Part shown: one piece after another, positions 1,482-51,078 of the stretch | Layout: each line of letters opens with the position of its first letter | How positions within the stretch are numbered: position 1 is the first letter of the stretch | DNA from: Paragordius varius | Taxonomy: Eukaryota; Animalia; Nematomorpha | Length of the DNA: 64,000 nucleotides | Reading direction: 5' to 3' | NCBI GenBank assembly: GCA_964247055.1 | Contig: OZ176054.1 | Span: 10,726,001 to 10,790,000 of the forward strand | Translations under genes and position numbers: made by a program | The notes under the pieces: generated by a model | What the model saw: the letters and a program-made list of their open reading frames with translations, nothing else | The model's database searches: none | What the model was told of the DNA's origin: nothing

Positions 1482-4123
1482 ATTGTTTTATTGTAAGAAT
1501 CAGAATCCAAGGGTACAAACCTAAATCGATGCGTAAGTTTACAACATTTCCCTGAACATGAAAATAGCCTTGAAAGCATAGACTGTGAAAACCCTACAAG
1601 CCCAAACATTCAAAAAGCCAATCCTCCTGACCATTTTAATTCATTTCAAAGCCAATCGTTAAAAAATGTATTGGGTGACAGTGAACCATCCAACATACTC
1701 CAAAGGTTAAATTCTAAGTCGCCTTCACAAGGTAATGTTGTGAGAACGGATGATAGCCCAACCAAATTAAATGCAATCCTTGATGAATATTTTAGCTCCA
1801 TTATAGACCCTTCCAAAAGCAATACTGCAATTAAAATCTCAACACATAATGAAGCTGAAGCAAAGTCAGAAAATACCGGAATGTTTTCAGAACCAAATAA
1901 ATTACCCCTACCATCAGTAGACGTTAATACACAGCTAAATTCATCAATCAACCCTTCAATAACAAGAAATACTGCTAAATCTGATACTAAAATCAACGCT
2001 GAGTTTTTGGATAATCAATCTTTAACATCATCCAACTTAAGTCTAATCGATGATGAGAAAATAAACATGACTGATAAAAATGCAATACCATTGAAAAATT
2101 CCACATTAATTAGGCCCAAGTACACGAGTCGTATTAACATAAGTAAGTAAATTATATATATTAGCTCCCCCGTAACTGCACATTTAAGCACTGTTAGCCC
2201 TTGTCAGACGATTTACCTTATAAGTACTTAATACAAATTAACTTCTTATTCTTTTAAGATAATTAAAAAGGACACTCTAACATGTATATTTTTTGTTTAT
2301 GTTTCCGATAACGAGTAAAATTATAAAAAAATAAATTTACGTTTTACCTTTTCTTTCCATTTTACATGATTTTCATTTAGTGATAGTATTTGTTGAACTG
2401 TGGATATATTTTAGATTTGGATGAAGAAATTTTTGGTGAAAAATATGATTGTAACAACAATAATAATAAAAATAAAGAAAATACGCCATACCATCATTTT
2501 CCAAACAAACTTAAGGATACGCATGTAAATCATGAATTGCTAACCGTGTTTGAAAAACGTCGAAATAAAATTTCTTCCGTCCTTCCCGTGAATCCAAACG
2601 CCCCTCTTGTCAAAACTAACTGTAGAAATGAAAATTTGAGCAATCTTACAGCCTCTGCTGAAATTTTATTGGACTGTAATGAACCCTTAAATAATTTTGA
2701 AAACAGCATAAATCATAATAATGTTGATGTAAAACCACCCATGATTGAAAAGAATAGGATAATCGTTCCCAAACAAGAGCGATTTAGATTAAGGAAAAAT
2801 ATTTATGGATATGGATCTTTGCATCATTTACAACCCAGTGATGTGGAATTATCACACATAACGCCAAACTCGCGAGATGGTATGGTACGTACACAAGAAA
2901 ATAGTAATATTAATAGGACTTATCATGATACCCTGAAACAAAATGCGTATGAAACTCAAACATTGTACCGGCAATCACACCCGCGATTTGCCAAGTACAG
3001 CAAAGAAGAAAATGGGTATCATCAAGTTGATTATCTGCACACAAATTCGATCGATAGGAAGCAATCTGGATCACTAAAAAACAAAGGCCCGCGGAAAGGT
3101 TGGACTCTACCGGAAAACGATGCATTCCATAATCAATCACAGACCACTGATCGTAGATTGAGACATAAATTTAGAAGATATGAAACGACGGACCCAGGCC
3201 AGTATCATCCATTGCACTCAAATGTAGAAGGTCAATTGGATAACGAATGGGATGAAAGGCTGGCATTGCGAAGGCCCTATCAACAAAATAATTGTCAGCC
3301 TGCTGTTTTTAGACCGAAACCACATACCAACATGCCCAAAATGCAATACAATACATATAACACAGGGAAAAATATGGATGAATATATATTACGTGAAAAG
3401 GATGAGCTGAATTTTGTACCGATAAACAGGGAGGATTTTGTCAATGAATCACTTTCGACCATGACTAAAAATATCTCCATTAATCAGAAAATTAATAAAT
3501 GCCGAGGGCCAAAACTATACAATCGTACCCAAATCCAAAGTTATTCTAGGGCGCCTTTGCAACCGAAATTAAACGGTAAGGATTATAGAAACCTGGATGT
3601 CCTTGATGATTCTGATTTAATCCACATGAGCACACCACATTTATCATATCCGGCTAAGCAAAATTTACATCAAAACTTTCACGGTGCTCCTGCTATTTAT
3701 ACAAACAAACGTCGGGCCCCTACAATTAATAATTTAACGACCTCTGACCTTATGTACGATCACCCCTCATTACACACTTTACATTACCCCGTAAACACAA
3801 CGAATTTAATTAGCTATGGTAATAGCGTAGAAAATAATCAATCTCATTCCAACACGGCATATGTGTCGAAAAATACTCCCATGTTTGACGATGAATTGAT
3901 TTTGCAACCCGGGGAACCGATATACATAACTAATCGAAAATATGATAAATTAGGTTGGTGGATGGCAGTGTCTTTGATAAGTGGGGAACGTGGGCTCGTC
4001 CCAAAACAGCATGTATCACAACAAAATGTTTCACACAATACTCATTCAAACACAGCGGATTTTGATATTGGAGACACAGAAAATTGTTACATCTACAGTC
4101 CTCCTCCAAATTTAGTGTACTAA
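1..4123 (+). CDS. 5'-partial Asn/Ser-rich low-complexity protein with C-terminal SH3-like domain
   Basis: Phase-consistent exons: <1-123, 516-996, 1498-2142, 2415-4123 (stop). They join track ORFs 774-1007, 1671-2150 and 2390-4123. The C-terminus DDELILQPGEPIYITNRKYDKLGWWMAVSLISGERGLVPKQHV matches the SH3 pattern (DEL..., GWW, GxxP). Confidence 0.75.
1143..1443. repeat. Foldback/palindromic MITE-like element in intron 2 of the SH3 gene
   Basis: Inverted arms of about 120 bp (1143-1260 vs 1321-1443) around a 60-bp spacer. The core AAAAATTGCGTACGGTTTCGGACACTATAAAGGAT is perfectly inverted. A (TA)n run follows at about 1449-1477. Confidence 0.85.
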
Positions 4124-5394
4124 AATTAATGCAAAGAAATGACAGCAAACTATATTATTTCTCGACAAAAAGAAAGGGAAAAGCGTGCGTCTACCAGTGA
4201 CTTTTTTGTAAATAGTTGATAAAATATGATTATATTATTTAAACAATAGTTATTGTCCTTATTTGATCGTCAATTATTTCAAATTATCATATATTCATCA
4301 TATATTTACCATATAAACCATTTAAAATATTAATTAATAAACTAATTATTTATTTAATCTAATTTCCAAATATAACGTGGATGTAGACACATTTATCTGA
4401 AAAATAAAAAAAACTGTATAATATTAATATCAAAACAATTATTTTTATATTATATTGAAACACACTGAAGTTTGCTAATTTTCTGAACATTTTTTTAATT
4501 AAGGTGGCTAAAGTTTTCCAAAAAATGCAAATATATGTTTTTTTCCTATAATTAAGCGGGATCAAGATTTCGTGAATTCTGATTCGCTTGGTTAATATAC
4601 GGTGGATCCCCCATCCTTACAATGAAGCGATTTTGTAATAAAATTTTTGTTTAAAATTTAATTATTTTTATTTTATTATATAATATATATTTAATTATAT
4701 TCTAAGAATATTATTTTTTGCTAATAAGGGTTGAATAATAGTTTATGGGAAGGTGTATTTAATTTTAAACGATGAAACCTTAAAAATCAAAAGCTTTATC
4801 TATATAAAGTGCTTGATGATCAAAATAAGCTAATTATTATAAGGTTTGTCTATTCAAACTTATCATGAGGGGGGTGTAAAACATAAAAATTTTATATCAA
4901 TTATGTTTAGTCCAGAAACAAATAATTTATTTTTAGGGTAAGTTTGAAGTGTTCGAGGGTGAAATTGAGGTGTGAAGGGTATATAACAAGATGTGAAACC
5001 TTTGAATGTGCTAGGAAGGATTATAGAATTCGAAAATAACAAACGCAATGTTTCTTTTTTGACCAATATAAATAGGACATATAGAGTTTACAATGTTGCT
5101 GGAAACAGCCTGGAACAGACTGTTAATAGAATTATATGAAACCAAATAACCTGGCGAAATATAATAAGAAAGAATCAGGCTCGATTTTAGATCCACAAAG
5201 TGGCATTAAATGTAAAATTGTATGATATTAAAAAGTTGATTTTTAATTTTAAAATAAGCTAACGTTCTATTTGTATACATTAAATAAAAATTATTCAACC
5301 AATTTGATTTATTTTAAAGCTTTAAGAAATTGAATATCAATTTAAATGTAAATATCATGAAATTATATTGTGTTCGTATAGGTTTAAGCGGTTA

Positions 5395-8300
5395 TTAACA
5401 ATGTTCAGTCATTCTCCAGGCATCAAAACACAATCCCTCCCTAAACATATATAATGCAAAGATTAATTATATCGTGATAGACATTTTGCCAAACGTAGTC
5501 TAATAAAATTATTTAAATTATGTTGAAGTTTTTAAACTTGTTACATTGACCGAAAAAATTCGATACCTTTTTAATATTATTTGATGGCTGATAACTTTAG
5601 TTTAAAATAATTTTTCCATTTTATTACATTGTACAACATTAAAAACAGCTGTGTAAAGGAAATCTACCCCTGATAATTAATAAATGTTGAACAGGTCATG
5701 GCTTTATAGTCTCCCTTTTAGAATTTTTAAACTCTGGGCGGCGCAACAAGCAGGTTGGTATTAAAAACGGTGTAAAATAAAGTCTGATGAAAATTAGATA
5801 TGGTTATAGGAGTCATTTTTTAATATTTAAAAACAAAATTTTATAGTCAGTTTATATAATTGTTTTCATAAGTCAAAAAATAAAACATTAAGTATCATCG
5901 CGTATAAAAATCCCATTATAATAATTAAAAAACAGTGAAAAAACTGAAAATCAAAAAAATACTGCATTTCCCTGCAACTTCGTTCTCTAACTTTGTACCC
6001 ATTTACGCATTCAGACCAGAGACTCCAAGGACCCCAAATTTGACTTTGTTTTCTGAGTATGGAAGATTTTGGTTGACATCTTCCTTGATAGCATAACTTA
6101 AATAAGGTTTAAAGAATTAGAAATTTAATTTAAATTTAATCCTATCTATAATAAATACATATTGGACTAAAGACAAAATATTTGTCAATATCCTAATAAT
6201 GACGTAGAAAAATCCTAATCAAGGGAAATTAAAATGTAATGAAGGTATATATTAATATAATATTGAAATATTTATATTATAGTAAAAATTAAAAATATAT
6301 ATTGGTAAAATGGAAAAAATTATTAAAAAATTTTTTAAGAAGGCAAACATGTTTTTAAACTTGAGTTTTAAATGGACATTGTTTTGGGTTGCGAAAGATG
6401 AAACAAAGATATACAGTATGAGTAAGTATACATTGCTAGAAAGTTACCGAATTATACTGCAACAAGAATTATTATTGGCTAATAATAGTATAAATTGAAA
6501 AAAAAACTTGTTGTATATACTATTTGGCGATAATCCATAACTTTCTAGCAATGTATACTTACTCATACTGTAAATTGTTAACACCTTAATTTTATAAGTT
6601 TATGTTAAAAAAATTTTTTCAATTATCAATACTAACTAATTATAATATATATAAATATTAACTCTATTTACATTTTCCCCTCGTAAATTCCATATTTATC
6701 ACCAATTTATATGTCAAGCAAAATTTAGTGAGATCTTTATGACCTTACCTAAAAGTGATTTTAGACAATGGTTATATGCTTAAAACAAACATATGACACT
6801 ATTCTATTAATATGCTAGAAAAACTTGCTTTTTAGATTTATAGCAGAAAATTAACTTTAAAGTCATATAAGTTGCTCAGATTAATTTTATTGATAGATAT
6901 AAATATATTTTACATTGCCATATCGAATTCCAGTCAGCATTGTACGCGTCATATTGAAGTCAAACGATAAACATGGAGTCCCTTCCATAGGTGCCGTATG
7001 TTGATCAACATTTAGATTAATGTTGCCTGATGGGATGGTACAAATTAGATTGGAACAATTCGAATTCTATTTAATAGAATAAAAATCAAATACAATTTAT
7101 TATTATTCTTAAAACTTTAACCAAGGGTGTCCAATACAAATGATTATCAGGGCCGAAGTTTCCTCTTAAAAAATTCAAAAAATATTGATCAAAATTTAAA
7201 AGTTTTAAGGACCAACTTGAAATGTTTAAGGACCAACTTGAAGTGTTAAAGGACACTCTTGAAGTGCAAATGGGATATTTAATAAACTGTTGGGATATTT
7301 CCGCCCTCAGAAAAATCTAAAATTTCAGATTCTTAATAACACTAGTCGACAAATTTGGACATTTTTGAGCACCACCACTCAAACTTTTAAATTATGACTA
7401 ATTTCAGTGTAAAACCGAATGTGAAAAAATATTTGATCCCGCCAATCAGAATTTTGAAATATTATAGGTTTTTCAATTTTTCAAAAACAAGAGAAAATCG
7501 AGAGATAATTAAATATAACTTTATAATAAAATGTTATTATATTAAAAACTTAATATCTATTAAAGCGTTTTAAACTCTATCTTTTGAATATAAATATGTC
7601 ATTTAAATATCAGTGAGAAAAAAATAGTACGGACTTAAACGTAATTTAGTCTTTTTCTTTCAAGTGAATTTTTAATACGTATAAAAAATTTTTAAAAAAA
7701 TACTAAAAAAGGGAATCTATGGTTTAAACCTTCGGCTTTCAGATAAGCTATATTTTTTGTTAGTTTTCGTTCTTTCGAGTACTTATTAGGCTTTTTCTTG
7801 AGTTGGTTCTTACAAAAAATCCTTTATTTATACCTAGTGGATATACTTTATATTTTAAAATTATTGGTTGTTTTGTATTATTAATTTCAGATGGATGTTG
7901 TGAGCCACTTTTGGTAGAATTTACTATTATGGGATTGGACCATTTGTATTTACCTAATCTTTTTATTCAATTTAATTGTAGAATTTATCAAACTTTATTC
8001 TAATTGGTTAATTTGACATGTCAATTTGCCTGGATTTTGCTTGCAAGTCTCTCTTATAGGGCTTTACGATTACTTATTGTTATTTTTGCCATATCTGGCA
8101 TAATTGGATCGCTTGGGGGATATGCAGAGCTTGTGCAGCCGCCCGGATCTATCACACTATACATAAGCTCCTTTAAGATTTTTAATACTTTGGCTCTTAG
8201 CTTGTTTAGTATCTTATTTAATGCCTAGAATTTTGTTATTCATGCATGGAATATTACTTGTATCGACTTGTTCGTTTGAATATTTAAACATATGGACACG

Positions 8301-11300
8301 AGGAATGATTGTTATTTTTAAATTAACAAATTTAAAAATTAAATTTCGGAAAAATCCTATTGGTGGCCTCAATTTTCTTTTTTGTTTTGGCCTTTCCATG
8401 CCATTAGGTATCAGAAAATGCAAAAATAATGGGGTGGTGCAAAACCTTGTTGAGCAGTGTAATTGATTTTATGAGAGAAAAATGCCGCGCTTTAATAATC
8501 ATCTCTTTGATGGATAATTTATCACTAAGAAATAAAACTGAAACCAAATTTTTAAGCTTTACCTGGACATTAATGTAAGATACGGGGTTCCCGGTTTGTA
8601 ATACACATTGCTGATCAAACAAATCGAATCCTGCCAATGGAACAGGACTTGTAGATCCTAAAGGGTCAACCATTGTTTTTAAACATCCACTTGAATTAGA
8701 ACTATTAATATCACAAAATAATTTAAGGGATGGCTATATTTTTTAAGAATAGTGTATAGCAAAACTTTTAGTTTAATAATAATTTGATTTTATGGATCAA
8801 TATAATATATAAAAATAACAGACACTAAAATGATGTCCATGTATTTGTACTAATAAATTATGGTTATGCAATTAATATCTGTTTTAATTTACCAAGGCAT
8901 TACGGGTAATACCCAGAAATATATTAAAAAAATTGTAGTTTTACAGGAGAAAAATGGAATATAATTTTAGATTCGATATAATAGACTGCTTTTTTGATAG
9001 GCTTGTTAGGATATGCTCAGGAACCGCGAAATTCTAAACTGTCAAATCGTTTTTTTCTGGAATTAAACTATTATTGTATTTAAATGCCTAATAACATTAT
9101 CGAAAATTTATGGCCCGATTTATTATACTGGAAATTTTAAAAATTAAAATTTTTAGATATATAGCCATTAATTTTATGTCGTTCGAGGGCAAAAGACTGC
9201 ATCTTTCGAGTAGTAGTTAGTCATTTTAATTAATCTGATTTAAGAAAAACGCTCTCGCGCGGGTTTGTCGCTTCATATGTCAAATATTAACTATCGATGT
9301 AAAACATCTTATTATGCATTTAAATAGAGTTTTCATTCGAATGGTATAATACAATAAAAATATACAAAATTCTTAGGTGGAATCATAATTTTTATTTGAT
9401 TTACTGTGAAAATGATAGCACATATAAGAAAATATAAACTCGAGCAGCAGAAAAATTTGTTGTCTAGTGAAATATAGGAATTTTATTCATTTTCAGGCCA
9501 TAGAAATAGCAAATTTTATGGTCTGTGTGTATGGTTTGTACTTCCAGATGATATATGCAAAATTAGGGGTAACTATCATATAAAATAAAATGCTACAAGC
9601 CAAACACACCAAGCAGCTGATTATAAATATTTTGGGTTATTTAACACTTGGATACAACACACTCATTTTAGTCCTTCGATTCAAATTGGGGTAGTTGGAT
9701 ACCCCAGGCCTGTTTAAAATCAAATCCTTTAAAAAGTATGGAAGGAATCGAAACCATGGCAAAATTTTGCACTTATATAACATTAATAAACCGAAATATA
9801 TAAAAAATTTTATTCAAAAATACTTAATATTACTTATTCTAAGCTAAAACCGAAAGGCAAAAATTTCGTCAACTTGACATGTGTCAAATTGTAAAATTAA
9901 GAAATAATACAAAACAAACCACTTTTTCTATTTCTATCAATGTTAGATGTAATTTACATAAAAAATTAGCTTTAGTTTTACCCTTAAAATTAAATGAAGA
10001 CGATATTTTGCAAAAATTTTGTAAAATAAAAATGGCGTCGAAGTAGTTTGAGATGAAACTTTTTTTTCAAAACAAAATTTTATTAAGATTGTTTGGCATA
10101 TTTGTAAAATTTTTATCAGGATAGAGGCATAAATTTAAATTTGGACTGTTTCCTTCAGTAATTTTTAAAAAATATTAATTTAAATTTAGTCTGGGGTATT
10201 TAGATACCCCAATTTGAATCGAAGTGTTAATATACTCAACATATGTGTAAATCGACTTTCCAAAAAAATTCAGCATAATTTAATTTATTAATTACCAAAG
10301 CTATTTTTTATACAAATTGTAAGAACATATGAGTTTTACTATGTCTATCTTAAAATACTATTTTGAATCCATCCATAGTAAAATTAGAATAAAGTTTTAT
10401 ATTGGGTAAACCGTATTCGTAAACAATTTAATCTTTGGATTATGTAAAATATTGTTAAAAAAGGTACCATCTATAAATATATGGATTCTGTAATGCTTAC
10501 AAAGCAAATTGGAATAGGTCTGAAACCGAACAAGTGCTCCAAATAAGTTTTTCTTTTGGAGTTGATTCAAAATGCATGATTCCTCTCTGTCCTTTTTCAA
10601 AACAATTAGTTGTGGTGGTATCATATTTGACTCCCATTCTAAAAGAAGTTATTTAATGAATATACGGAAATTATAATTTAATGGTCAGTTATGGGACTAA
10701 CCGACTCTAATATAAAATTGTTTAACTATAAGTAAAGAAAATTTATATTTTAATATCAAATATTACGAATAAGCAATTCCTCTGGCAATGTGTAGAGCAG
10801 TTTCAAGATTGAACTCCGAAATTAACATTGCATTGTATGAAGTGCACATATGATTGTAAAGAGCATAGAACGGAACTTTATAGGTGATAAAATATATAAA
10901 TAACTAAATAAGACTATTACACAGGACACACAAAACTTAATAAACATATATTATCATAGATACATCTATCAGGTTTTTTTATTTTTGCTAGGCCTACGAG
11001 TAATGTATGAAATATATTTATTTAATGTTAATTGCTCTATATCGAAAAACCGCAAAATTTGCGCGCAATTATGATCAATAAAATCTTTCAGTGAGAACAA
11101 TACATGTGTAAAACAAAACATTATAAATTTGTTTTTAGATAAGGCCTCTCCCCAAAGTCTGAAAACGCCCATATAAAATGGGCTAGGTATCCTAATTTAA
11201 ATGTAAAAATGCCTACGTTATATTAAATGTATACAAGATGGCATAGCAAACTTTTTAGTTGACACGTATTTAGATTTATCAACTCAGATCAGATATTAAA

Positions 11301-14300
11301 TAAATAAATATAATAATTTGTAAAATATTATGTTTTTTAAAGACAAACAATTCTGTGGATATAAATGTTCAGCATCATAATTATATACAATAAGTTTTTA
11401 TATAATTTTACAGCGTTTTTCTACGGCTACCTTTGGGTCAAAACAGAATGTGGTACGCTTCAACAAAATAAAGTTAATTTTTCAACAAAGTTTTGATATC
11501 ATAATCTAGCAAATATAATAAATGCCACATGGTTTTGGGTGCCCACATTTAATATATAAAAATGTCGTTTTGTTTAATATAGATATATATTTATATTTTG
11601 ATATTAAGCTTTTAGCTTTCAATTTTTTAACATATGTGCGCAAATATTGCGATTATTCGATATGGATCACACTATACCGTACCAAAAAATCCGGATATCT
11701 TTCAGAATATATATATTTCATCACTTTTTTCTGCGATTTTGTGTGCAGTTTTAGGCAAAATGTTTAATAATTTTTTTATATTTCAGTAATTATTTTCAAA
11801 TAATCGCATTATAAAATAAAAAAATACTTACACGGAGTCATGTAAAACGGTTTGCTACAAATATTGATATATTGTAAACAGAAATATTTGAATTAAGATT
11901 GTAATTATGAGAGAATAAGTTTTTGCAATCTAAGGATTTTGGACTGTTAAAGCCATATAAGCCAAATAAGTGCAATAATATTTTATGTTGCCAAACAATG
12001 GATTTTTTTTCATTGTTAATCATAAGTCAAAAATAATGCGCTATAGTATTTGGTCACAATATCTAGGCAAAATTCCTATCAGTTACTCCCAAGAATAAAG
12101 TTGATTTTAAATATGCATTTATTAGTTTTTATGGATTATAAAACAGTGTCCACTTAAAAAAAACCTGTTAAAATATATATTTTCTGATTGGAAAATGGAT
12201 CAAGATCATTGTGGTGTTTTGGCTAAGGCCCTTAAGAATGATTTAATAGGGTTATATACACTTTTGTTGTAAGGGCCCCACATCAGAAAATTGAAAAATT
12301 TTACATTTTCGCAAATAATTTTTTTGCTAGAGCTAAAAGCGAAAAAATATTACTCAAAATATATCATAACATATAAAATGCAAATTAAAATATAAAAAAG
12401 TTTAGTTTTTAAATGTATGCTTCAAAAGCTGCAAATTTTTCCGCTCTTTCTAAAATGGGATAGTTTTATTTAAATTAACCCGAAAATGCCGATATCAAGC
12501 GACGTAACGGATAAATATTGACTAAAATTATTTTTTTAAATGCGTACTAAAATTTAAATTATAAGCAAATTTGTTTGAAATTTATACTATTGTGAAGCAT
12601 GATGGAAACAGTAAATAAAGGCTTTAAAACATTATAAAACCACTTTTTCTATATAATTCGATTATGTTGAACATTTCTATCAGAATTTTGATCAAAATTA
12701 TAATTCTGTAAATTTAATAAAAAATTGTGTTGTTCTACGAAATTTCCTTAAAAGTTTTAAAGCAAACCAACCTTTTAATTAAAATTCTGATAAGTATACC
12801 TTTAATGTCTTAAAGCGTTTTTACACCGTTCCCAAAATGCATCAAAATAGTATGAAGTACGCTTTAACAAATTTTAATAAAAATTAATTTGAGAAAAGTA
12901 TGCATTTTTAGTTTACAAAAATTATAATTTAATATTTATTGCATTGCTTTGAAAGAAAACTAGCTTATAGAAGATCGAAAATTTTGGGAATTTCATACAC
13001 CCCATCTAAAAATTTTAAGAATATTGTTTTGCTTTTCTTATGCATTTTATGATATATTTTAGTGATAATTATTGGAATAAAGCATTAGCTCTTACCCAAA
13101 AATAATTTTCGATATGGAACACTTACCACAAAAATCTAAATAACTTTATTAAATCACTTGAAAACCAAAAGCAACAGAGGCGTAGCATTTCTGGCCCCGG
13201 GTGCATGAATTCGTGAGGGCGTCCCCCTCCCAACCCCTTGCATTTTAAATAAATTATTAAATTTAAACCGTGAGCCGGATGAAATGTGACCCGTCATAAA
13301 TAGAAACGCATGAAAAAAATTATGCTATTCAACCGTCTCCTTTGAAAAGACGGCTTGATTAGCAAATGTATCAGTAATAAGAGAAATAATATTAGTTTCG
13401 CCACCAAAAGTTTAAATATGAATGTTGCATAAAAGCAGTATTCTAACTGCATTCGAATGCCTGGCCCGACTAAAAAAACTTTTATTATGGCTTATTTCCG
13501 AAAAAGAGTGGCAATTCTTAGGTATTGAAAACATCAAAAAAATACCATGAAATTAAATATAAATTTTCACGAAACTGCATCCCTAGACATAAATATAGCA
13601 TATTTTATATATGATTCAGATTGATTTTTTATCGTATTATTATTATTTATGTCTTCTATTGTATGGATATTGTCGAAAAATATCTATGCGCCGTTGTTAA
13701 GCCGAAGGGTTGTTAAATTATAATTATCTAAAATTATTGCGGCCCTGTTGTTGGGTAGATGTGTTGTAAATTATTAGTATCTGAAGGTGATTTGTCGGAT
13801 TACAATTATCTGTATATTGGACCGCTGTTGTTTGCTATCATGATTATAGCATTATGCAAATTTATTGCAACCATTCTCTTATTTTATGTGGTATAATTTT
13901 CTTTTTATATTCGTTTTTTATTTTGAAACCGCTAAGTTTATGCATTCCTGATAATAATAATAATAATAATTTAAACCCATCAAGATTATCAGAGCAAACG
14001 ATTAAAATAAAACTAAAAATATTAAAGCCATAGTATAATAAAAAACGGTATTAAAACCGGAACCGTTTTAGGGTCCGGTTCCAAGTCAGTATTTTGATTT
14101 CGGTCCCTGCTCTATTTTTTAATCAAGAACCTTTATTTCCAAAATGGTTTCACTATATCTTGATCAAAAATCTTGATTTTTCTATTTTTGAGGCAACATA
14201 TAAACAATTTAAATGTTATAATGGCCATGGAAACAAACGGAATTGTTTGACTCGATTAAACTATACTAATTCACTTAGTAATATTGATATATAAGTATTT

Positions 14301-17300
14301 AATGGTCTCATGTCAAAATACTTCAAGCTATGTAGTTCAATTTGTATATTAAAAATACATGGAATAGGTATCATTATAAAAATATAATAATAATTTGATA
14401 TCTCTCTAAAGGATAATGTAATAATGAAAAAAGAAATATTTTAAGAGCATGGCATAATGTATATAGATGGTATACCATGTCCAAAAATGGAAAAGAAAAA
14501 TTAACAATTATTTTGAAATTTATATAATATTAAAGAATTTTAACATAATGGGTCGCATATTGGACAAGCAATATATATAATTTTGAAAGATAATTAAAAT
14601 AAAATTAAATCCTATTATTATATCTGACACTTTGATGATTTACATAAATTACATGAACAACAAACTGTGGACAGGAAGGGTTGGCTGAAATAAAGTGAAG
14701 AGATATAATAAATAAGGAGAAACAGTTGGTTAGATTTAAATATTGATAATGCTGAAGGAGAATTTTGATCATTGAAGGTCTGACCAATAAATGGTATTAT
14801 TAAAATAATAACTTTCAAATTTTTTTTAAATAAAATTAAATTTTTTTAAAATCTGGCGCTCCCTCAACTATGGCACCCAGTTGTCAGTTCCCCTTTCCAC
14901 CACTCTAGCTACGTCACTGAAAACCATGCTAATGCTATTTCCTATCAGAATATATATATTTCATCAGGTTATTTTTTATCCCCCGAATATTTCATCAGGT
15001 TATTTTTTACCCCCCGATTTTGGACGCAGTGTAAAATCTTTTTCATCAGTGCATTGTTGTTAAATGTTTTTCGATAAAACCGGTGGTGCGTGCATCATAT
15101 ATTTCATATATATATAGGAACAAGCTTATGTTACATCTTATTTACCTCGTCGTTTTAACCTCAAATAATATTCTATTTTGTAATAATATTTTTATTTTTT
15201 GCTCGTTTGTGCCTATTAAGAATGCAAATAGACGATACACACAAGACCCAATAATCATTACATCAGTCGCTTAAAAAAATCTCAGTATATTTCATATTGC
15301 ATTAACAATAACATAAAAGTGATAAATATTTTATTATTTTAAATCAGAGGTTAGCACGCGGCCCTCCGAAATATTTCTGCAGCCAAAAAAATTCACATAC
15401 AAAATTTTATGAAATCTATGATTAGCTTAAACAAATTTCTGAATAAACTTTCGAATTTGGGCAATCTAGCAAAACTATTAAACTAAATAGTAGTTCTTCC
15501 ATTCTCTGTTTGAAATTTAATAAAATATTTATAAAGCACATAGATTTTCCGATTGGAACCGCCAGTAGTAAATATACCCGAAATCTTATGTGTTGGACAC
15601 CCCTGTTAATGTTGTAATAATCCCTTTTCACAATATCCATCATATGTGTTAAATAGTAAGTAGATATTAATTATAGAGAAAATATATATCAAACTTTATC
15701 CATAAAATAGATAAATCTGTGTCAAAAAAGAATTTCTCCTTGTATTGAAGGAATCGAACATAGATTTGTTGATAATTTCCCTCAAATGGATCCTATTGCA
15801 AAAAATTGAGATATTTTAACGTTTTCAATAAAAATAACTGATATAAATGAGTAGTATATACAATGTATGATCCTTCATCATATATAACAATGTCTCCAAC
15901 TAAAACTCGTATATTTATACTGATGAGCGGATAATTGAATATTTGGTTCACCTTAAATAAATATATATATGATTTAAACTTTATTCAAAATCTTTATGAC
16001 CTTTTGGGGTGGTTCTACCCAGTGCCAGTATTTATATTTAAAAATATGCTTTTTTAGGCGGTGATATTTTTTAAAAAAATAATATCGTAAAAAACTCATA
16101 TCTTGCCGCCATTTTACTCAATAAATTGATAAGACAAGAGGAAAATAAATGAATATGGTTTAAAAATATTAATAATACAAAAGCTTACTACAATTAACCG
16201 GCCATATTTTTATTTTAATATCAGCTGCTTACTTAATGTTTTGAAGCTAGCCGAATTTACTACTATAAAAGTTGTATTATCTATTAAAATTACAGTTTTA
16301 TTTATCATGCAGGAGGAGAGGGATAGTTATGACTTAACAATTTAGCCGTAGTTTTTTTACTATACTTTAAGCTCTAGGGTAGAAACTACTCCAAAATGTC
16401 ATTACTCACAAAATATAAGTTATAAAGTGTTAAGGTAAATTAATTATCCTATGACACTAAAAATTACAATGAAAAAGTTCTAAATATTTTAATATGAAAT
16501 ATTTATGTTAAATCTTGTCCGACGGACAAGATGCGTAAACTTGGGATAAGATGTAGAAAGCAAAACGTTTAGCCATATTTAAATTTGACATAGGAATGTG
16601 TAAAGTCGTTTCGATATTGTATTCCAAATCGACATGTCTTTTTGTGGGGACGGTCAAGTTAAATATCTTGAAATCTGTTACTAAAATTCGTAAATACATA
16701 AAATATAGTAAAATGAGAGACAAAAACTGGTACAACTAATATAAAATGGACCATAAAATTTTTATCATTAAATATATATATATATAGTGATGTAGTGATG
16801 TAGTACACTTTATGATAAACCACCAATATTTGGAGATTATTAAAATGATATTTCCTTTGTTTTATTCTACAATACCATTATATATTAAAAATTCATAACT
16901 CCAATTTTTCGTTCTAACACAACGATTACATTCAACCGTATATTTATTTATATATAACTAAACGAAAATTATTATAACATAGTTGTCTTTAAAACATGCT
17001 GGAAACCGCACCATATGATTAAAACAAAATTTTATGCGTTTTCCTAGGAAGGCTTAGATTTAGTAAAGCGCCTTTCTTATAGCCCCTGGTTAGTCATTAC
17101 CCGATTTGACTTCTACAATAGATTTAAAGCAATATTCCAGAAAAGTTATAACCCTATTAGAAATCGTCAAATGATACTTCTGTAGATGTGCCCATCATAA
17201 TCAGACAATTAACTATTTTTATAAAATTAATTCACATACTAAATTATACAAACCTGGTATAGGTAATATTTAGATTAGGCGTAAAAATTAGAAATTAAAT

Positions 17301-18015
17301 TAAAAATGTATAGGTTTATTTAAAACAATGTATTAATCTAAATTAATGATTACAAGTAAAGTATTGGGTTAAATTCATATCCGATCTCTCTAATTTAATA
17401 TAATTTTGTAGTGTGGACATCGTATATATGGTTGATGCCAGCTCAAATCTTCCATGCTAAAAAATATAATAATCATTGAGATAAATATCTAATGGCCCAC
17501 ATATAGAGCATTAACAAATTTATAAAATTATACAAATACTATTCTAAGGAGTGGCAAACATATCTTAGTTAATACTAAATGCCATAGAATTACCTTAATG
17601 ATATCATCATACATTTCTAAAACGATTGATACGTTTGATATGGATTTTGTATGATTTTTAACAAACATATCTATATCATCATTATGGATTTCAACATCGA
17701 GATTACCCAGCCATATTTTGACAGTGCCGACATAAAGATGGTTGTTTTGTTCGATAAAAGTTTCTGCTATGTTAACTGCTGTACCATTTGATCCATAGTT
17801 TACGTTTTGGGCCGGATCAAACTGACCACGTAAACTGTTATGATGTCGGAAATTCGGAGTTAGTAAGGACCTGCATTTAGTTACTGTAATGTTTAGTCTC
17901 AATATTTTCCTTATTTCAGTTTGGTTAAATGAAGAATTTGCGATTAATGTTTGATTGATCCACGGATGTAAGATCAGAGAATGGGATTGAACGTTCGTAA
18001 AAAGTGTGTGGATAC
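5395..18015 (-). CDS. ADAMTS/reprolysin (M12B)-like protein: propeptide, metalloprotease-like domain with degenerate zinc site, ADAMTS disintegrin-like/Cys-rich module and one TSP1 repeat
   Basis: Minus-strand exons, all GT-AG and phase-consistent: 18015-17594, 17456-17354, 16680-16541, 15951-15862, 15792-15695, 11854-11832, 10875-10767, 10638-10501, 8701-8563, 7066-6914, 6096-5963, 5440-5395 (stop); about 530 codons with no internal stop. Motifs: LLTPNF (propeptide), TKR/YNIETTL, HMCTS, GIMH (Met-turn), WSTCS, GCL, FDQQC...CSNLIC...EGTPC...LCYQGRC, WGPWSLWSEC...RERSC. Tentative 5' exons are 18399-18363 (hydrophobic PYIACLVFVIEF) and 18304-18251; the ATG was not located. Confidence 0.85.
7205..7273. 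repeat. Solo terminal fragment of the 21-bp-repeat MITE family
   Basis: AAGGACCAACTTGAAATGTTT units ending in GGACACTCTTGAAGTGCAAATGG, matching the right end of the element at 55343-55983. Confidence 0.8.
7340..8459. mobile_element. 1.1-kb non-autonomous DNA transposon with CACTA.../...CAGTG termini and 3-bp TSD (copy A), in an intron of the ADAMTS-like gene
   Basis: Colinear with 56115-57254. Termini are CACTAGTCGACAA... and ...TTGTTGAGCAGTG, with TAA on both flanks. A degenerate minus-strand peptide RSGRLHKL is reminiscent of Tc1-type transposases. Confidence 0.8.
9641..10230 (+). mobile_element. About 590-bp MITE with TTAA flanks (piggyBac-like), copy 1
   Basis: TTAA-CACTTGGAT ... ATCGAAGTG-TTAA termini and subterminal GGGGTA-N-GATACCCC palindromes. 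Homologous to 31556-32112, 46652-47222 and 49740-50298. Confidence 0.85.
13175..14919. mobile_element. Probable old hAT-like non-autonomous element in an ADAMTS-like intron
   Basis: Imperfect TIR: CAGAGGCGTAGC (13175) and GCTACGTCACTG (14908-14919). The flanking 8-mers AAAAGCAA and AAAACCAT match at 6 of 8 positions, consistent with a decayed 8-bp TSD. Confidence 0.5.
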
Positions 18016-20149
18016 CTAAATTTAAATGTTTTTTTTTATTTTTTAACGTAATTTTCAAAATTTTCAATTAATGATCGAGTCTAGAACAGATGGTAAGGTT
18101 TTACAAGACTGTGTCGTTAGTTTTAATTCCGACCTTTGCGATTTCGACACAATTTTAGAATTGAGACTGATAAACAAACGGTTCTCTTTCCTACATTAAA
18201 ATCTATCGGCGATTGTAAGTAAAAATGTATAATGATTAAAATATTTGTACATTTTTGAAGTGATATACGCTTTTGAAGGTTATTCATATCCTTAGTTATG
18301 TAGTCTATGTATGGGTAACATAAAATAAGGTGGATATATTATGTATAGAAATTAATAATTACCAAATTCAATGACAAATACTAAACAAGCAATGTATGGC
18401 TAATATACATTGAGAATCTCCAGCAATCGATCGAATCCATAAAAAACATGATACAATCGGCTTAAAAAACTTGTAAAAGGTTTAAATTCGTTTTTATTTT
18501 GTAAATTTTATAGTAATCAGTTTATGCCCGTTCTGAAATCTATCCAAAAAATGGTTAACAAATATTGTAAGTATTTTGGATTCTGTGCCTTAAGCAAAGA
18601 TGCCTTAAGAACCCGTTAATTTTATTCTAACTAGGACCTGTTTGCTCCATATTGAATGTATTTATTCATATAACTATTATTATGATTACAATAATTAAAT
18701 AACTTGCATTCAAATAAATTTGTATCAAATATTTTATACAAAATTGGCGAATGTTACTTGATTTATATCCAAACACAAATATATTAATATTTGAAGAGGT
18801 TTCGATGAAAATATATCAATAATAATTCTAAATTTATTCAAATTATTTGGTGTCTATTCTAATTACAACGTGAAATTTTCATAACAAGATTAGTAAGCCA
18901 CATAAAAATCTTGCACAATATTTAATTAATAAAGAGATGACGATTTCGGCCAAAAAACTAAGCCTTATCCTGACTAATAGATAAAAGAGAGATTTAATAT
19001 ATGGATCATGGGAAAATCGGTTATAGCTCTAAACTGTAATTGGTTAGAATTAGATTGTTCAGATGTACACCATCTTATGTGATTACCTATATTCATTACG
19101 GGAAACTGATGAGTCTACAATAAAACGCGCCTAATACTATGACACTTAGTAAACCCTGTCTTTGAAATTTGGATATCATAGCCATAAAATGCGTCAGGAG
19201 GTATGATAACTTTTAGTCTGCGATCTCCAGGCCACACAAAACTCGAGCCATCTGATATTCTTAAAATCTGGGTCCGTATATATATTTAAATCCGTATATA
19301 TTGAATCCTATAATTGTCTACGACATTTAATTTTTTGGAGTTTTTTTAAAAATTAAGCCATTTTATGATTCCAAATGAATCTTAAACAGAAATTGTTGAT
19401 TACATGGAAACCTATATAGCCAATTCGATAAAAGTACCTTTTCCACCAAATATAAATATGGAAAAGAATGTGCATTGCCAAACGAATAACATAAGTTTTT
19501 TCTTACTGTATATTATTTTTTTAGTTAAGCAAAGTTATAAGTAAGCAAAGATGAAACTATAAATGAAAGGCAAATTAATTAAAAAATATTAAAATTTAAC
19601 TGGTTAATAAACTCAATTAAAAAGGTGTTTTTATCAAAGAGTCAAAAAGGTTCATTGACGGAACATACATAAATTTACTAAATAAAACAATAATCAATAA
19701 CCGTTATATTTTAAAACTCTTTTTCGAATGATTTTATTAAATTTAAGTGTATGTCATTCATTGAGTTAAATAAAATCGCGCATCATTTTAATATTGCAAA
19801 TGATGGGCAAATAGGACTTATTTTGTTATATCAAGAGCTTCCTAAAAAAGATAAATAAAATATGAAATTAGAATATTGTAAAACTTTGCGGAGTAAAACC
19901 GGTTACTTTTTATATTATTTTAATACAAATTGTTATTTGATGGAAGTCTTGATAGTCTTTAATCTCGAATGTGTGATTCTAAAATGGTATAAATTGTGCC
20001 ATTTGAAAAAAATGTATTGTATTTCATAACTTTCATAATGATGAAACTTATATTTTGTTTATGGGGTATTACACTTGTAAATTTTCAGTGGACGGGCATA
20101 CTCTTTAAGGAAAAAGTCAATAAAGTATATTTTCGGGTCCTCAATCCTA

Positions 20150-22967: not shown

Positions 22968-25900
22968 CAAGAATGCTACATTTCTTCTACCGAACGCAAC
23001 ATTTTTACATATTAACCAATACTTTTTCAAGCAAACGCAACACCTTATCAAGCAAACGAAACAATTTTTCATATAAAGTCAACATTTTTTCAATGTCTTT
23101 GATTGAAAAAATGTTGCTTGCTTGGAAATGTGTTGCATTTGGAAAAAGTGCTGCATTTTGAAAAAGTGTTGCGTTTATTTGAAAAAAAATTGGGTGATGA
23201 AAAAATGCTGCGTTTGACTAAAAAATGGACTTTGTGTAATAAGCGGATACATGTTTTAATTGTTTAGGAATAATATCTTATAATTAATGATTTGTGCTCT
23301 TTTTATATATAACATCCTTTTTAGCTCTTAAATACATCATTTATCCAAAATTTATATGATGTGGTTTAACTCAACTTTATCAAGTTAATCATTATCTTTT
23401 TTTTGGTAATGTTTTCCTACATCAGGCATAACATACGATTCATGTTTGTTATATAGTTTTCTTGAATCATTACAATGTTTAATAAGAAAAAAATTTATAA
23501 ATATTTTTACAAAAGTTGGGTAGAACGGCTTTATTAAATTAATATTGCTAATTATATATGACTATCTTAGAATTATAAATTATATTATTATAGCTAATCC
23601 AAAAACATTTTGCGCAAAATGTTCCAAATCCATCCTAAACCCGCAAGATTATTTGGGCGCTACACCAACTATATGGGAGACAGAATACGATGATTTTACA
23701 AAGAACTTATTATTGGTTTGAAAAGATAATTACTAATTTATTGAAAATATTCAGTTATAAAAGATCATAATATATTATTGTGCCGAATTTAGTTTAAATA
23801 GTTTTGAATATTATAAAGGGAATTCCAGCGTTAGAATCCGAAAAAAAGGTAATCATATAAAGAAAAAAATGATTATAAAATCTGTCAGCTGTTTTAAAGA
23901 ATTTTTGATGAAAATATGTTTGTTCAAAATGGCTACATCTTTGGTAAATTGATATTAGTAAATAACAAGGGTGACCAGATTTTTAAATGGACACGAGACA
24001 ACTCTGAACGGAACGGGGGTTTACTATATAAAATTTCGTATAAAAATTAATATCGTAATATTTTTTTATTTTCAAAATAATTACAATTTATAAGTATAAA
24101 GAATCTAATATATTTTGTTCCTTAATATATTTTATTGAGTGAATTCATTTGAGCACGTTGTTATCATTTTATGAAATATTATAGAAATCTTTACAAGAAT
24201 TAGTTAAATTATATTCGTCACATAAAATGGCTTTCGGAGTTTCAATAATAAATTTAGATTTTTCTGATGTCCACACTTGCTCTAGAATAATACAATCAGC
24301 GTTAGTTCCAGGTAAAGTTAATGTGACACAATTATTGAAACATTATTTTTAGGATCGTAGTTTTAAAACGATGAAATATATTCTACAATTTGTTTCTGTT
24401 ACTGATGCCTAATGTTTGAGCTTGTCCTTATCAATATTTCTCTAAATGATACTTCATTAAAACGATCATTTTCAGAAATGTTGTTGGGAATTTCTGACAT
24501 ATATCGTCAAATGATTTTATAAACACAAAAGATCACTCCTCTGAATATCAGTCATGTACTCTTTTCTGCACTGATTTTAATATAAAAATTAAATGTCTAA
24601 AATTTACTTTTAAAAAATTGTAGGATGCGCGAAATAGTAACGAATCTGAACTCTCCCGCCAAAAGCGGGACGTCTGGTCACCCTATGAGTTCCCCGTATT
24701 TTAATCTGATAGTTAACGACAAACACACGCACACTTAGTCCAACAAAAACCAGCATATTTTTTTACGTGTGATAATCATTCGTATTTTGGGCCTAATTAT
24801 ATTTTACCGCATGCATTTCATTTGCTATTCCATCAGTGTCATTTTTTTTCTGGTAGAAACGTTTGGTGAACATGCTCTCTTGAACATTTATACATGTTTA
24901 TTTTAGGGTTGTGAATTAATGTGTAAGTAGGCGCTTTCGTTATTAGCAACTGCTAAAACGATTTAAGAGTAATGAATGAACTTAAACTAACGACAATGGT
25001 ATAAGCATTATGTATCTCACAAAAACAATCATTAGGACCAGCAATGGAAAAAAATAATTTCGGTAGATTGTTCCCATAAAATTGGAAAGTGACGTGTAAT
25101 TCTGCTTTGAGGTGGCTTTATTTTGCAAATCCAAAGCGGAAAAAATATGTTTTCTTTGCCTAGTTGTCTAACTACAAGGTCAAATCTTGTCATAATGACC
25201 ATGCTTTGTGTCTCTAAGGATCTGACCGGTATTTCGTATTAGGACCTGGTGAAACCGTTAGCACACAGCACTCTCGCTTATAAATGATTAATATAAACTA
25301 TACAATAATCGAAATATGAACTGAATGCGCCACAATCAAAGGGATTTTGCTACATGGCAATGTCCATCCTCAGAGAAGCCTGTAAAAGACTCTTTATTCC
25401 TTTGATGGGAAAATCTTTCTCAGATCCAATACATCCTAACTAACGATATCTGCTTTATCTTTTCGACGTTGGAAAATGACTTGATAATGCTTGCCGCAAA
25501 AGACTTTTTTCTGACATGTCATTTATATATTAACGGATACCTGAGAAAGGGGCGAAATCGTAAAGTGGTTAATTAGACAACATTTTATATAATGAACAAT
25601 TTATTTTCTTTCAAAATTAGCCGTTACAATACTGCGAATACATTAGGTGTGTATATATATTTAAAACTATATTTTTTTCTTACACCTTTGAGTTTTTTTA
25701 GAATAGTAGGTCCATAAAGTTCAAATATTTTCTGTATTAGAAATGCTGGCCGATCGATATCACCCACACAACAGAATGCATTAACAAATGTGGTTGGGAA
25801 TATTATTGTAGTGAATCCTGCAGAGATCAAAGCTGGAATTTTTATCATTCAGTGGTGTGCCCTCAAGATGAAAAGTCAAATCAAAATGAAGAATTAAAGA

Positions 25901-31300: not shown

Positions 31301-31555
31301 ATTTAAAGTATGGTTCTTTCCCCTTAATCCGTTACGAAGGTTCCCTTTATTCGCCAAATTTAATCGGATATTTGCAAGCGATTTTAAATCCAATCTCTCT
31401 ATTGCAATCCTATGATGACTACCATTATCTATCAATTTATCAGGTAAAATTAATTTGATATCACTTCCACATATAAATTATTTCAGATAATTTGCTTGAT
31501 CATATTTTCTTAAGCATTTTTATTGTAATCTGCAGTTATTTTAAATTATTTGAAT

Positions 31556-32112
31556 AACCTTTGGATACAACATATTCATTTTAGTCGATTTAAATTGGGG
31601 CAGTCAAATACCCCAGGCCTGTTTAAAATTAAATTTTAAAAAATTATGGGAAATCAAAACCATGGCAAAATTTTGCACTTATATAACATTAATAAACCGA
31701 AATATATAATAAAACCTATTCACAAATACTTGATATGATTTATTTTAAGCTAAAACCGAAAGGTAAAAGTTTAGTCAACGTGACATGTGCGCAACGCTAA
31801 AATTAAAAACAAAAAATAAACCGCTTTTTCCATTTCTATCAATGTTCGATTCTAATTTAAATTAAAAATCTTTAATTTTACCCTTAAAATTAAATGAATA
31901 CGATATTTTGCAAAAATTTTGTTAAATAAAAATGGCGTCGAAGTAGTTTGACATGGAACTTTTTTTTCAAAACAAAATTTTATTTGAATATTTTGGGATA
32001 TTTATATAATTTTTATTAGGATAGAAGCATTAATAAATTAGGACCGTTTCATTTAAAAAATTCTAACTCAAATTTAGTCTGGGGTATTTAGATATACAAT
32101 TCGAAGTGTTAA
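31556..32112 (+). mobile_element. TTAA-flanked MITE, copy 2
   Basis: Colinear with 9641-10230. The right end TTCGAAGTG-TTAA is intact and the left end is degenerate. Confidence 0.8.
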
Positions 32113-32389
32113 TACATTGTTGAATTGGAATTTCGTAATATATATAGATACGCCTTATAACATTTTGAGTAATTATTGGTAAATCCATATTAGGTAATAT
32201 TTAAAAATGTACATTCTCTTGCATTTTAAGCGCAACATTAACAAATGATAAAAATCATTTAATATATTGTTTAAACTGGAATCACTCTTAAAACATTGGG
32301 ACATTTAAATATATGATTAGATGATAATTAAAAAATGTCAATAATTGTCTAATATCCTAAAAATACTGCGTAATGACTTTTATTTACAG

Positions 32390-33653: not shown

Positions 33654-33699
33654 TAAACATCATCCCTGACAGTGGTTACGTCCTCTATCACTTGTGTTG

Positions 33700-45302: not shown

Positions 45303-45904
45303 ATGTTATTAGAGGTTATTATTGTATTACTCTGTGCTTGTCGCAATTTAATTGACGGTAATCAAATATAAATTTAATGTTTTAGGGCAAACAATCCAAG
45401 TCCATCAGAACGGTAAGTAATATTCCAATAAAATATTTTATTATGCAGTATTAAATATTTTATTGCACACTCAAAATAACTATTCTTTTATTTCGTTAAT
45501 ATAGTGTCCAATGTAATTACTTTTTTTAATTATAATTAGATCAATACGCATTAGGCCATTTTGGAAATGAATCCCATGGTATAACTGGTATTTTGAAAGC
45601 GTTAAACAAACATACATTGATGGTAACCCAATTCTCTTATGATGGGTTAGCTCCACAGGCATATTTCGTTGTGGGAAATAATGATACAGATTTTGCAAAT
45701 GGTTTGAAAATAGATGATAGAGATCGTGCATATGCCACCAATAAAACTTTTAATGGGGACGCAACATTCTACTTTGATTTACCAGAGAGTGCAACGTTAC
45801 CAAATATCCATTGGTTTATAGTTTGGTGTGCTGATGTTTCAAGAAGTTTGTCAACCATATACCTACCTAATATCCCATCATTTTACGAATCTATCCCTGC
45901 TTAG
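45303..45904 (+). CDS. Small secreted single-DM13-domain protein (148 aa)
   Basis: Exons 45303-45357 (signal peptide MLLEVIIVLLCAC), 45386-45412 and 45540-45904, with consistent phases. HGITGILKALNKHTLMVTQFSYDGLAPQAYFVVG...FDLP...WFIVWC matches the DM13 pattern seen in Skeletor/Knickkopf-type proteins. Confidence 0.85.
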
Positions 45905-47222: not shown

Positions 47223-47299
47223 AGCAATCCTACCAGGAAGTTATTTAGTACAATTTACATAATTAAAATAATTTAGCATAATACACATATTCTTTGCAT

Positions 47300-50995: not shown

Positions 50996-51078
50996 AAAAT
51001 AACATGCAAAAACCCTACTTTTAACTTTTTCATATGTTATTTATAAGCATGAGAACACATTTTTGATTTTTCGCTATC

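Follow-up and report, generated by a model that had tools for sequence, protein, structure and literature searches.

Protease domains that have lost catalysis and serve binding only are established among the ADAMs, with ADAM22 and ADAM23 at synapses and ADAM2 in sperm as examples. MIG-17 of C. elegans is short and secreted, and consists of a prodomain, an M12B domain and a disintegrin-like module without a long ancillary region. It is a member of the ADAMTS family (PMC7710118). Catalytically dead M12B domains are well known in ADAMs, where ADAM2, 7, 11, 18, 22, 23, 29 and 32, and C. elegans UNC-71, are non-catalytic and work by binding (PMC11266112). All human ADAMTSs are predicted to be active (PMC4448532). 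The M12B consensus reads HEXXHXBG(N/S)BXHD, and the Met of the Met-turn lies 14-20 residues beyond the third His (PMC4448532). The ADAMTSL proteins and papilin are non-enzymatic secreted relatives of the ADAMTSs that are thought to bind matrix and to modulate ADAMTS activity (PMC4448532).

Within a 64-kb stretch of Paragordius varius DNA (hereafter the window) we analyzed a minus-strand locus that is moderately likely to be a real protein-coding gene under selection, encoding a small, probably secreted ADAMTS-type pseudo-protease. Its predicted layout begins with a candidate signal peptide and a prodomain with a K-R site; next come a reprolysin (M12B)-type domain, a disintegrin-like module and a single thrombospondin type 1 (TSP1) repeat, reduced to 4 Cys. 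This predicted module order, from the prodomain with its basic site to the central TSP1 repeat, is that of the ADAMTSs (for instance ADAMTS4, the minimal human member), and the motif spacing, the Met-turn position and the W-S-x-C-S sequence agree as well (PMC4448532). Unlike the ADAMTSs, the hairworm protein has all three His and the Glu of the zinc site replaced, lacks the Cys-rich and spacer regions found in every described ADAMTS, and is short of approximately six cysteines.

The non-catalytic ADAMs likewise have zinc and/or base residues substituted while keeping the Met-turn, and the Y-D ending of the hairworm motif is shared with ADAM2 (Q-L-L-S-L-S-M-G-I-T-Y-D) and ADAM18 (...G-L-T-Y-D). 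These, however, sit in the membrane and contain true disintegrin and Cys-rich parts, an EGF part and a transmembrane part. The hairworm protein instead combines a TSP1 repeat with an ADAMTS-type module, without ADAM-specific Pfam matches on any exon and with no transmembrane segment seen. The ADAMTSL proteins resemble it in being non-enzymatic and secreted, but consist of the ancillary region only (TSR, Cys-rich, spacer), without a prodomain, a catalytic domain or a disintegrin-like module; the hairworm gene is the reverse, with a dead protease core kept and the ancillary region absent. MIG-17 differs in being an active protease and in carrying a PLAC module in place of the TSP1 repeat. The sequence-only reading had called the locus a candidate for an undescribed system, which is overstated, as dead M12B domains are textbook knowledge for ADAMs (PMC11266112). 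The unusual feature is the presence of such a domain in an ADAMTS-type protein, given that the human ADAMTSs are all predicted to be active (PMC4448532). Our literature search found no paper describing an ADAMTS pseudo-protease, and ADAMTSs are not mentioned in the hairworm genome papers.

The locus was rebuilt independently of the sequence-only reading, using predicted junctions (Table 1). The rebuild gave a chain of 12 in-frame exons, spanning 18015-5395 and comprising approximately 531 codons with no stop. All 11 introns are bounded by GT and AG, and the exon phases are compatible throughout the chain. Intron DNA on the same strand contains one stop per 13 codons, so that the chance of an open frame of this length is approximately 10^-18.

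Table 1. Predicted exons of the ADAMTS-type locus and mobile elements in its introns (window positions).
Feature	Position	Strand	Content or basis
Candidate first exon (ATG)	18287..18176	-	in-phase path enumeration
E1	18015-17594	-	140 codons, presumed N-terminal part of prodomain
E2	17456-17354	-	presumed end of prodomain
E3	16680-16541	-	dibasic P-T-K-R, then start of catalytic-type domain (E-Y-N-I-E-T-T-L...)
E4	15951-15862	-	catalytic-type domain, I-N-I-R-V-L-V-G-D-I-V-I-Y
E5	15792-15695	-	catalytic-type domain; weak donor GTTTGA
E6 (micro-exon)	14684-14644 (or -14653)	-	Q-P-F-L-S-T-V-C-C-S(-C-N-L)
E7	10875-10767	-	ends ...N-L-E-T-A-L-H-I-A-R-G-I-A-Y-S
E8	10638-10501	-	M-G-V-K-Y-D, Met-turn, W-S-T-C-S
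E9	8701-8563	-	last catalytic-type Cys (S-S-G-C-L), start of disintegrin-like (ADAM_CR-type) module
E10	7066-6914	-	disintegrin-like module, N-S-N-C-S-N-L-I-C...E-G-T-P-C
E11	6096-5963	-	end of disintegrin-like module (L-C-Y-Q-G-R-C), then TSP1 repeat (W-G-P-W-S-L-W-S-E-C...)
E12	5440-5395	-	end of 4-Cys TSP1 repeat, stop TAA
Intronic transposon copy	7168..8459		repeat comparison within window and reads
Intronic MITE-like element, ~590 bp	9639..10232		71-nt inverted arms

Because E1 starts in phase 1, at least one additional 5' exon is needed. The candidate first exon joins E1 in phase, with an ambiguous donor (18176, 18149 or 18134), and its peptide (M-N-N-L-Q-K-R-I-S-L-Q-K-C-T-N-I-L-I-I-I-H-F-Y-L) is signal-like, its n-region being basic and its core hydrophobic; the protein is probably secreted, by the reading of this candidate signal exon. 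E1 itself contains many N-x-S/T sites and one Cys. The micro-exon E6 was picked by enumerating 61 candidates and is required because phase 2 must be bridged to phase 1; its acceptor is good, and its donor may be either 14653 (GTAATT) or 14644 (GTAAAT). Two donors in the chain are weak (GTTTAC and GTTTGA), and the intron after E4 is 69 nt long. A stretch at 15094-14972 was considered as the exon with the "F-C-x-W-Q" sequence, but proved repeat-like; the real exon is E5, where Leu takes the place of the cysteine (R-F-L-Q-Y).

Pfam searches were run exon by exon. Three separate exons gave matches that are co-linear in the ADAMTS order, each below its curated cut-off: Reprolysin on E8 (E=0.0015-0.0049, 17.3-19 bits versus a cut-off of 20.8, profile positions 143-187 of 200), ADAMTS_CR_2 on E10 (E=0.029-0.04, 14.8-15.2 bits versus 27.3) and TSP_1 on E11 (E=0.002-0.008). 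These weak matches agree with the earlier assignment of the gene to the ADAMTS type. The other five exons of the catalytic-type domain had no Pfam match. A phmmer search of the PDB with E11 returned the TSRs of BAI1, TSP-1 and C7 at E=0.045-0.17, with W-x-x-W-x-x-W...R-x-R-x-C aligned, which provides weak but consistent support for a central TSP1 repeat; the same search with E8, E9 and E10 was blank.

The propeptide, by contrast with the sequence-only claim that it is retained, is placed by position only: Pep_M12B_propep matched no exon in the exon-wise Pfam search, E1 had no Pfam match at all, and an Atlas feature search with E1 gave only noise (scores <0.8). An AF2 single-sequence model of E1 alone was unusable (pLDDT 30.6). 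The processing site P-T-K-R is present, with its dibasic K-R at 16642-16637, but lacks an Arg at P4; the domain assignment of E3 follows the general ADAMTS pattern.

The cysteine scaffold is retained in part. Most cysteines are present, but in our alignment approximately 6 of the ~22 expected are missing, and by our reading the disintegrin-like module has six of its eight. The losses appear to go in disulfide pairs, namely C1 and C5 of the M domain, C2 and C5 of the disintegrin-like module, and C1 plus one distal Cys of the TSP1 repeat, if the connectivity is, as we presume, that of ADAMTS1. The stop codon (5397-5395) directly follows the TSR, no open reading frames for the ADAMTS ancillary regions (Cys-rich, spacer) lie downstream on the strand of the gene, and the adjoining downstream gene is a converging SH3 gene (2387-4120), all of which bears out the proposal that the protein ends after one TSP1 repeat.

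The exons carry a coding signature. Their GC content is 35.2%, versus 26.2% in the introns, and is distributed over the codon positions as.39/.36/.32, as in bona fide genes of the window. In frame, the codon log-likelihood reaches +107 bits; out of frame it falls to -87 and -170. The score per codon is +0.20, versus a mean of -0.08 in stop-free intronic controls. The open frame and this signature support the maintenance of the locus as a gene, as far as sequence can tell.

Mobile elements were found in the introns, as had been reported. The transposon copy is 92% identical over 7333-8459 to a copy at 56108-57254, has 21-bp arrays at 7168-7282, and occurs in many copies among the reads of a second organism label. 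The MITE-like element has three further copies in the window (83-87% identical) and a contig depth of up to ~28,000. The reading frame of the gene is intact despite these insertions.

It is possible, if somewhat unlikely, that the locus is instead a pseudogene, young and unexpressed. It would have been copied from a hairworm ADAMTS-like gene that was already non-catalytic or divergent, and would have lost its function too recently to have acquired a stop or frameshift. The long introns full of transposons, the two weak donors, the ambiguous micro-exon E6 and a start codon that is a candidate at best would fit such a copy. No RNA was found either: three small read runs, guessed to be RNA, contained no reads on 5300-11000, a result that is uninformative since there is no control gene for comparison. 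E1, the longest exon (140 aa), gave nothing in a homologue search of proteomes, and its one match among 1.84 billion cluster representatives (E=3.7e-4) was to a repetitive bacterial-type protein and is spurious. The only hairworm proteome searched was that of Gordionus sp. m RMFG-2023, in which Vps52 of the window, used as a control, has 47% identity; because Gordionus is so distant, a blank for a fast-evolving secreted protein says nothing on orthologues. Within 10 kb on either side of the Gordionus Vps52 locus there was no ADAMTS-like gene and no other common neighbour. As a second synteny anchor, the zf-MYND-containing ORF at 25741-26706 had no match at E<=1e-10, a threshold that is too strict, and tblastn found no paralogue within the window.

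Against a pseudogene stand the complete absence of stops and frameshifts from the chain, although a stop would result from 5.3% of all single-base substitutions, the GT-AG borders kept in every intron, and the intact exon GC and frame-specific codon bias. A frame of such length would rarely outlast approximately 2-5% neutral divergence, whereas the transposon copies in its introns have diverged by 8-17% from their sisters. Because about one in twenty single-base changes would make a stop, any decay would have to be far more recent than the loss of the active site. Even for a pseudogene, the dead site would have arisen under selection on the frame, and the pseudo-enzyme state would still be real for the lineage.

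At the position of HExxHxxGxxHD, the joined exons E7 and E8 read I-A-R-G-I-A-Y-S-M-G-V-K-Y-D, in which the part from Arg to Asp occupies 10783-10767 and 10638-10620. The first His is changed to Arg (10783-10781), the Glu to Gly (10780-10778), the second His to Tyr (10771-10769) and the third His to Tyr (10625-10623). All four catalytic positions are thus changed, which requires at least 5 base changes in 12, and all four structural positions are conserved. The motif retains its large non-polar residues and its Gly, the Asp after it is present, the Met of the Met-turn (G-I-M-H, 10577-10575) lies 16 residues past the third-His position, within the 14-20 range (PMC4448532), and W-S-T-C-S follows. 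The exon borders (AG|...|GTAATA for E7 and TTTTAG|...|GTAAGC for E8) and the joined reading confirm the replacement of the entire zinc site that the sequence-only reading had described, together with the retained Gly, Asp, Met-turn and W-S-x-C-S. An assembly error is unlikely, because contigs of the second organism label show one difference across 10417-11000, a span that includes the active-site exons; in the E7 region they are near-identical, with that one difference unplaced in 10625-11000, and the record over E8 has none.

Since the junctions are predicted, the exon model could be wrong at the active site, with a true transcript that restores HExxH and encodes an ordinary protease. This is very unlikely. 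E7 and E8 join without a gap to give the M12B pattern over its full 21 residues, the 128-nt intron between them is clean, and read-through of the E7 donor meets a stop at once. HExxHxxG is absent from every frame of the window, and the only HExxH-like string on this strand within the locus, P-H-E-F-M-H-P-G at approximately 13215, has neither M12B context nor a Pfam match; an alternative exon supplying HExxH, which the sequence-only reading had named as a possible refutation, is absent from the locus. Catalysis or metal binding through a non-canonical site (Tyr or other ligands), or by a different chemistry, is less probable still: two Tyr and nearby His (L-H-I-A-R, G-I-M-H) are present and, as a general point, catalytic residues have relocated in some so-called pseudoenzymes (PMC10211241), but the Gly at the general-base position has no side chain. 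No M12B member is known to function without the His triad and the Glu (PMC4448532, PMC11266112).

The protein is therefore, on its sequence, probably a non-enzymatic pseudo-protease. With Arg, Gly and two Tyr at these positions, the M12B-type domain would be unable to bind the catalytic zinc or to activate water, while the residues that shape the fold (the non-polar residues and Gly of the motif, the Asp, the Met-turn and most disulfide pairs) are kept. We infer that the protein may fold like an ADAMTS protease core and act by binding instead of cutting. The remnant of the cleft, the disintegrin-like module and the TSP1 repeat could then serve as a scaffold that binds matrix or substrates, or compete with active ADAMTS paralogues; this binding or decoy role is modelled on the non-catalytic ADAMs and the ADAMTSL proteins.

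A broader reading, which we offer as speculative and rather unlikely, is that the protein belongs to a group of minimised, secreted ADAMTS-type proteins that radiated in hairworms only, made up of the protease core and one 4-Cys TSP1 repeat, in which catalysis was lost repeatedly and disulfides were shed in pairs. Such proteins would be binding factors at the parasite-host interface, with host matrix, haemocytes or protease inhibitors as conceivable targets, and if this is true no family of ADAMTS pseudo-proteases would have been described before them. Coming from the sequence of one gene in one genome, the finding carries modest weight. The ADAMTS branch has been described as uniformly catalytic, and its non-enzymatic ADAMTSL relatives have just lost the protease core altogether. 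If an ADAMTS-type protein is maintained with a core that looks intact but holds no metal, pseudo-proteases can evolve in this branch too, and the protein would offer a natural minimal scaffold for learning which partners the core, the disintegrin-like module and the TSP1 repeat bind when nothing is cut. In a parasite that manipulates the behaviour of insects and has almost no functional genomics, such a secreted family could reasonably be considered for a part in host interaction.

The exon model of the minus-strand ADAMTS-like gene was built by listing the stop-free stretches of that strand, reading their borders base by base and enumerating in-phase AG...GT intervals for missing exons. The resulting chain of exons E1 to E12, numbered 5' to 3', shows GT-AG at all introns, compatible phases and no stop in approximately 531 codons before the terminal TAA. 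Because the gene's own introns carry one stop per 13 codons, the chance of such an open frame is about 10^-18. The sequence-only reading had proposed 12 exons spliced in frame without stops, with which the rebuilt chain agrees, and the borders of E7 and E8 are exactly as claimed. The transposon insertions that it placed in the introns were also found: an element at 56108-57254 recurs at 7333-8459 (1.15 kb, 92% identical), a MITE-like element occupies 9639-10232, and the depth of contigs from organism B (a second organism label compared with the window) rises up to tens of thousands over 6255-6636, 7019-8546 and 9120-10265, the exons being single-copy. The E9-E10 intron copy and its sister (7168-8459; 55338-57254) both include 21-bp subterminal arrays, and organism B contig depth over the MITE-like element is approximately 28,000 at most. 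A stretch at 15040-14950 (minus strand, E5-E6 intron) was rejected as an exon; it is a short direct duplication with a G-rich start followed by 'taaaaaataacctgatgaaatat', and probably a repeat fragment.

Features of the window (positions in nt; E1-E12, exons of the ADAMTS-like gene)
Feature	Position	Strand	Details
E1	18015-17594	-	exon model
E2	17456-17354	-	exon model
E3	16680-16541	-	exon model
E4	15951-15862	-	exon model
E5	15792-15695	-	exon model
E6	14684-14644 (or -14653)	-	exon model
E7	10875-10767	-	exon model
E8	10638-10501	-	exon model
E9	8701-8563	-	exon model
E10	7066-6914	-	exon model
E11	6096-5963	-	exon model
E12	5440-5395	-	exon model; ends at TAA 5397-5395
MITE-like element	9639-10232, 31555-32114, 46650-47223, 49738-50299		~590 bp, 71-nt inverted arms; four copies, 83-87% identical
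MYND zinc-finger	25741-28313	+	two ORFs, 322 and 127 codons
Reverse transcriptase; LTR-type integrase (rve) + RT_RNaseH fragment	47369-48534, 33663-35065	-	retroelement remains; RVT_1 E=2e-25
DM13-domain exon	45536-45901	+	E=9e-18
Vps52	51067-53472	+	single uninterrupted 802-codon ORF; Vps52_CC E=5e-40, Vps52_C E=9e-39
Laminin-type EGF repeats	59440-63054	+	run of short exons; EGF_laminin E=1e-5 and 5e-5

Exon-by-exon searches of Pfam gave three matches, all under their curated cut-offs: Reprolysin, the M12B metalloprotease family, on E8 (E=0.0015-0.0049, profile positions 143-187 of 200), ADAMTS_CR_2 on E10 (E=0.03-0.04) and TSP_1 on E11 (E=0.002-0.008). As profile matches on separate exons in ADAMTS order, they are not attributable to chance. 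Among solved structures, the TSP1 repeats of BAI1, thrombospondin-1 and C7 also match E11 (E=0.045-0.17); the other exons gave no domain or structure-database match in the searches run. By eye, we take E3 to hold a dibasic P-T-K-R site, after which the catalytic-type domain begins, E4 to be the beta-strand block of this domain and E5 presumably the 'F-C-x-W-Q...D-T-x-x-L' block of the ADAMTS pattern.

Since E1 begins in phase 1, a 5' exon is needed; the candidate start is an ATG at 18287, which opens a textbook signal-like N-terminus, and several candidate donors could join it to E1 in phase. The earlier claim that the protein ends after one TSP1 repeat holds: the stop lies directly behind the repeat, no ADAMTS-like sequence is present among the minus-strand ORFs examined downstream of E12, and within approximately 1.3 kb of the 3' end a converging SH3-domain gene starts. 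It follows that the protein has neither a Cys-rich nor a spacer region, both of which are present, to our knowledge, in all described ADAMTSs. As the zinc motif, the second defining feature, is also absent, we term the protein ADAMTS-derived rather than an ADAMTS.

Joined, E7 and E8 read ...N-L-E-T-A-L-H-I-A-R-G-I-A-Y-S-M-G-V-K-Y-D.... Against the published consensus HEXXHXBG(N/S)BXHD (PMC4448532), the four catalytic positions are R, G, Y and Y, and the four structural positions are intact (B=M, G, B=V, D). In E8, the G-I-M-H Met lies 16 residues past the third-His position, within the published spacing of 14-20 (PMC4448532). This confirms the replacement of the His ligands and catalytic Glu with retention of the motif Gly and Asp and the Met-turn, as first read. 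Swapping all four catalytic residues takes at least five base changes in 12 bases.

When the protein is aligned to the ADAMTS pattern, the cysteines it lacks are partners in known disulfide bonds, if the connectivity annotated for ADAMTS1 applies. The catalytic-type domain has Leu for the 'F-C' cysteine and Ala for its partner, the 'S-C-A-I' cysteine; the disintegrin-like module lacks its second and fifth cysteines; and in the TSP1 repeat the first is Trp (alignment to solved TSP1 repeats) and one distal cysteine is gone. If two cysteines were lost at random, they would be partners with p ~0.14 per module and ~0.02 jointly, counting the catalytic-type and disintegrin-like modules only. The pattern is suggestive of loss as disulfide pairs; the literature (PMC4448532; PMC4885070) supports the number of bonds only.

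The gene might be a very young pseudogene, a reading that we regard as unlikely though still a serious contender. Against it, GC content is 35.2% in exons vs 26.2% in introns, and codon-position GC agrees with that of bona fide genes in the window. With a codon model derived from those genes, the exons score +107 bits in frame vs -87 and -170 out of frame (per codon, +0.20 bits vs an average of -0.08 for stop-free intronic controls). A stop would arise from 5.3% of the possible single-base substitutions in the frame, which could thus rarely remain open beyond a few per cent of neutral divergence. The transposon copies in the introns are 8-17% divergent from sister copies in the window, a soft argument as copy divergence is not insertion age. 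Taken together, this indirect evidence favours a maintained gene. Three small read sets, presumed to be RNA and lacking a control gene, showed nothing over 5300-11000. The dead site therefore greatly predates any loss of function that the gene may have suffered and arose with the frame under selection.

That the active site was mis-modelled is very improbable: HExxHxxG is absent from every frame of the 64-kb window, and read-through of the E7 donor runs at once into a stop. The sole HExxH-like string on the minus strand in the locus, considered as an alternative active-site exon, lacks both an M12B context and a Pfam match. Nor is the dead motif likely to be an assembly error, since organism B contigs differ from the window only once in 10417-11000. 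A non-canonical catalytic site is the least probable explanation, with all four catalytic positions replaced.

The window is eukaryotic and AT-rich (26-35% GC) and contains no paralogue of the gene. Its EGF_laminin exons probably form one multi-exon extracellular gene, and a search of 578 word-sharing candidates at E<=1e-10 gave no relative for its MYND ORFs. With E1 as query, two large protein searches returned nothing real, a blank that is uninformative because the sole hairworm proteome there, Gordionus sp. m RMFG-2023, provides the best relative of the window's Vps52 at only 47% identity; a synteny route through the Gordionus Vps52 locus was unsuccessful. The Vps52 match agrees with a hairworm source, one distant from Gordionus. 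The Gordionus orthologue extends across 13 kb and has many introns (10001-22973 of L001, this locus with 10 kb either side); the intronless Vps52 of the window either has lost its introns wholesale or is a retrogene-like copy.

In a non-exhaustive literature search, no account of an ADAMTS-type pseudo-protease came up, nor any mention of a hairworm ADAMTS. For many families, MEROPS includes homologues that are not peptidases. Human ADAMTSs are all predicted to be active (PMC4448532). ADAMs provide well-documented cases of dead M12B domains, in proteins that keep the Met-turn and act by binding (PMC11266112); the hairworm protein likewise retains the Met-turn, and its motif ends in Y-D, as do those of ADAM2 and ADAM18. 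ADAMTSL and papilin are non-enzymatic with the whole protease core gone, whereas the hairworm protein retains the core in dead form.

A maintained gene of this architecture with a dead site would, on the reading towards which we lean, encode a secreted, prodomain-processed, non-catalytic binding protein. It would fold around a metzincin-type core retained without catalysis, and this core, the disintegrin-like module and the TSP1 repeat may together bind matrix components, substrates or partners of active paralogues.
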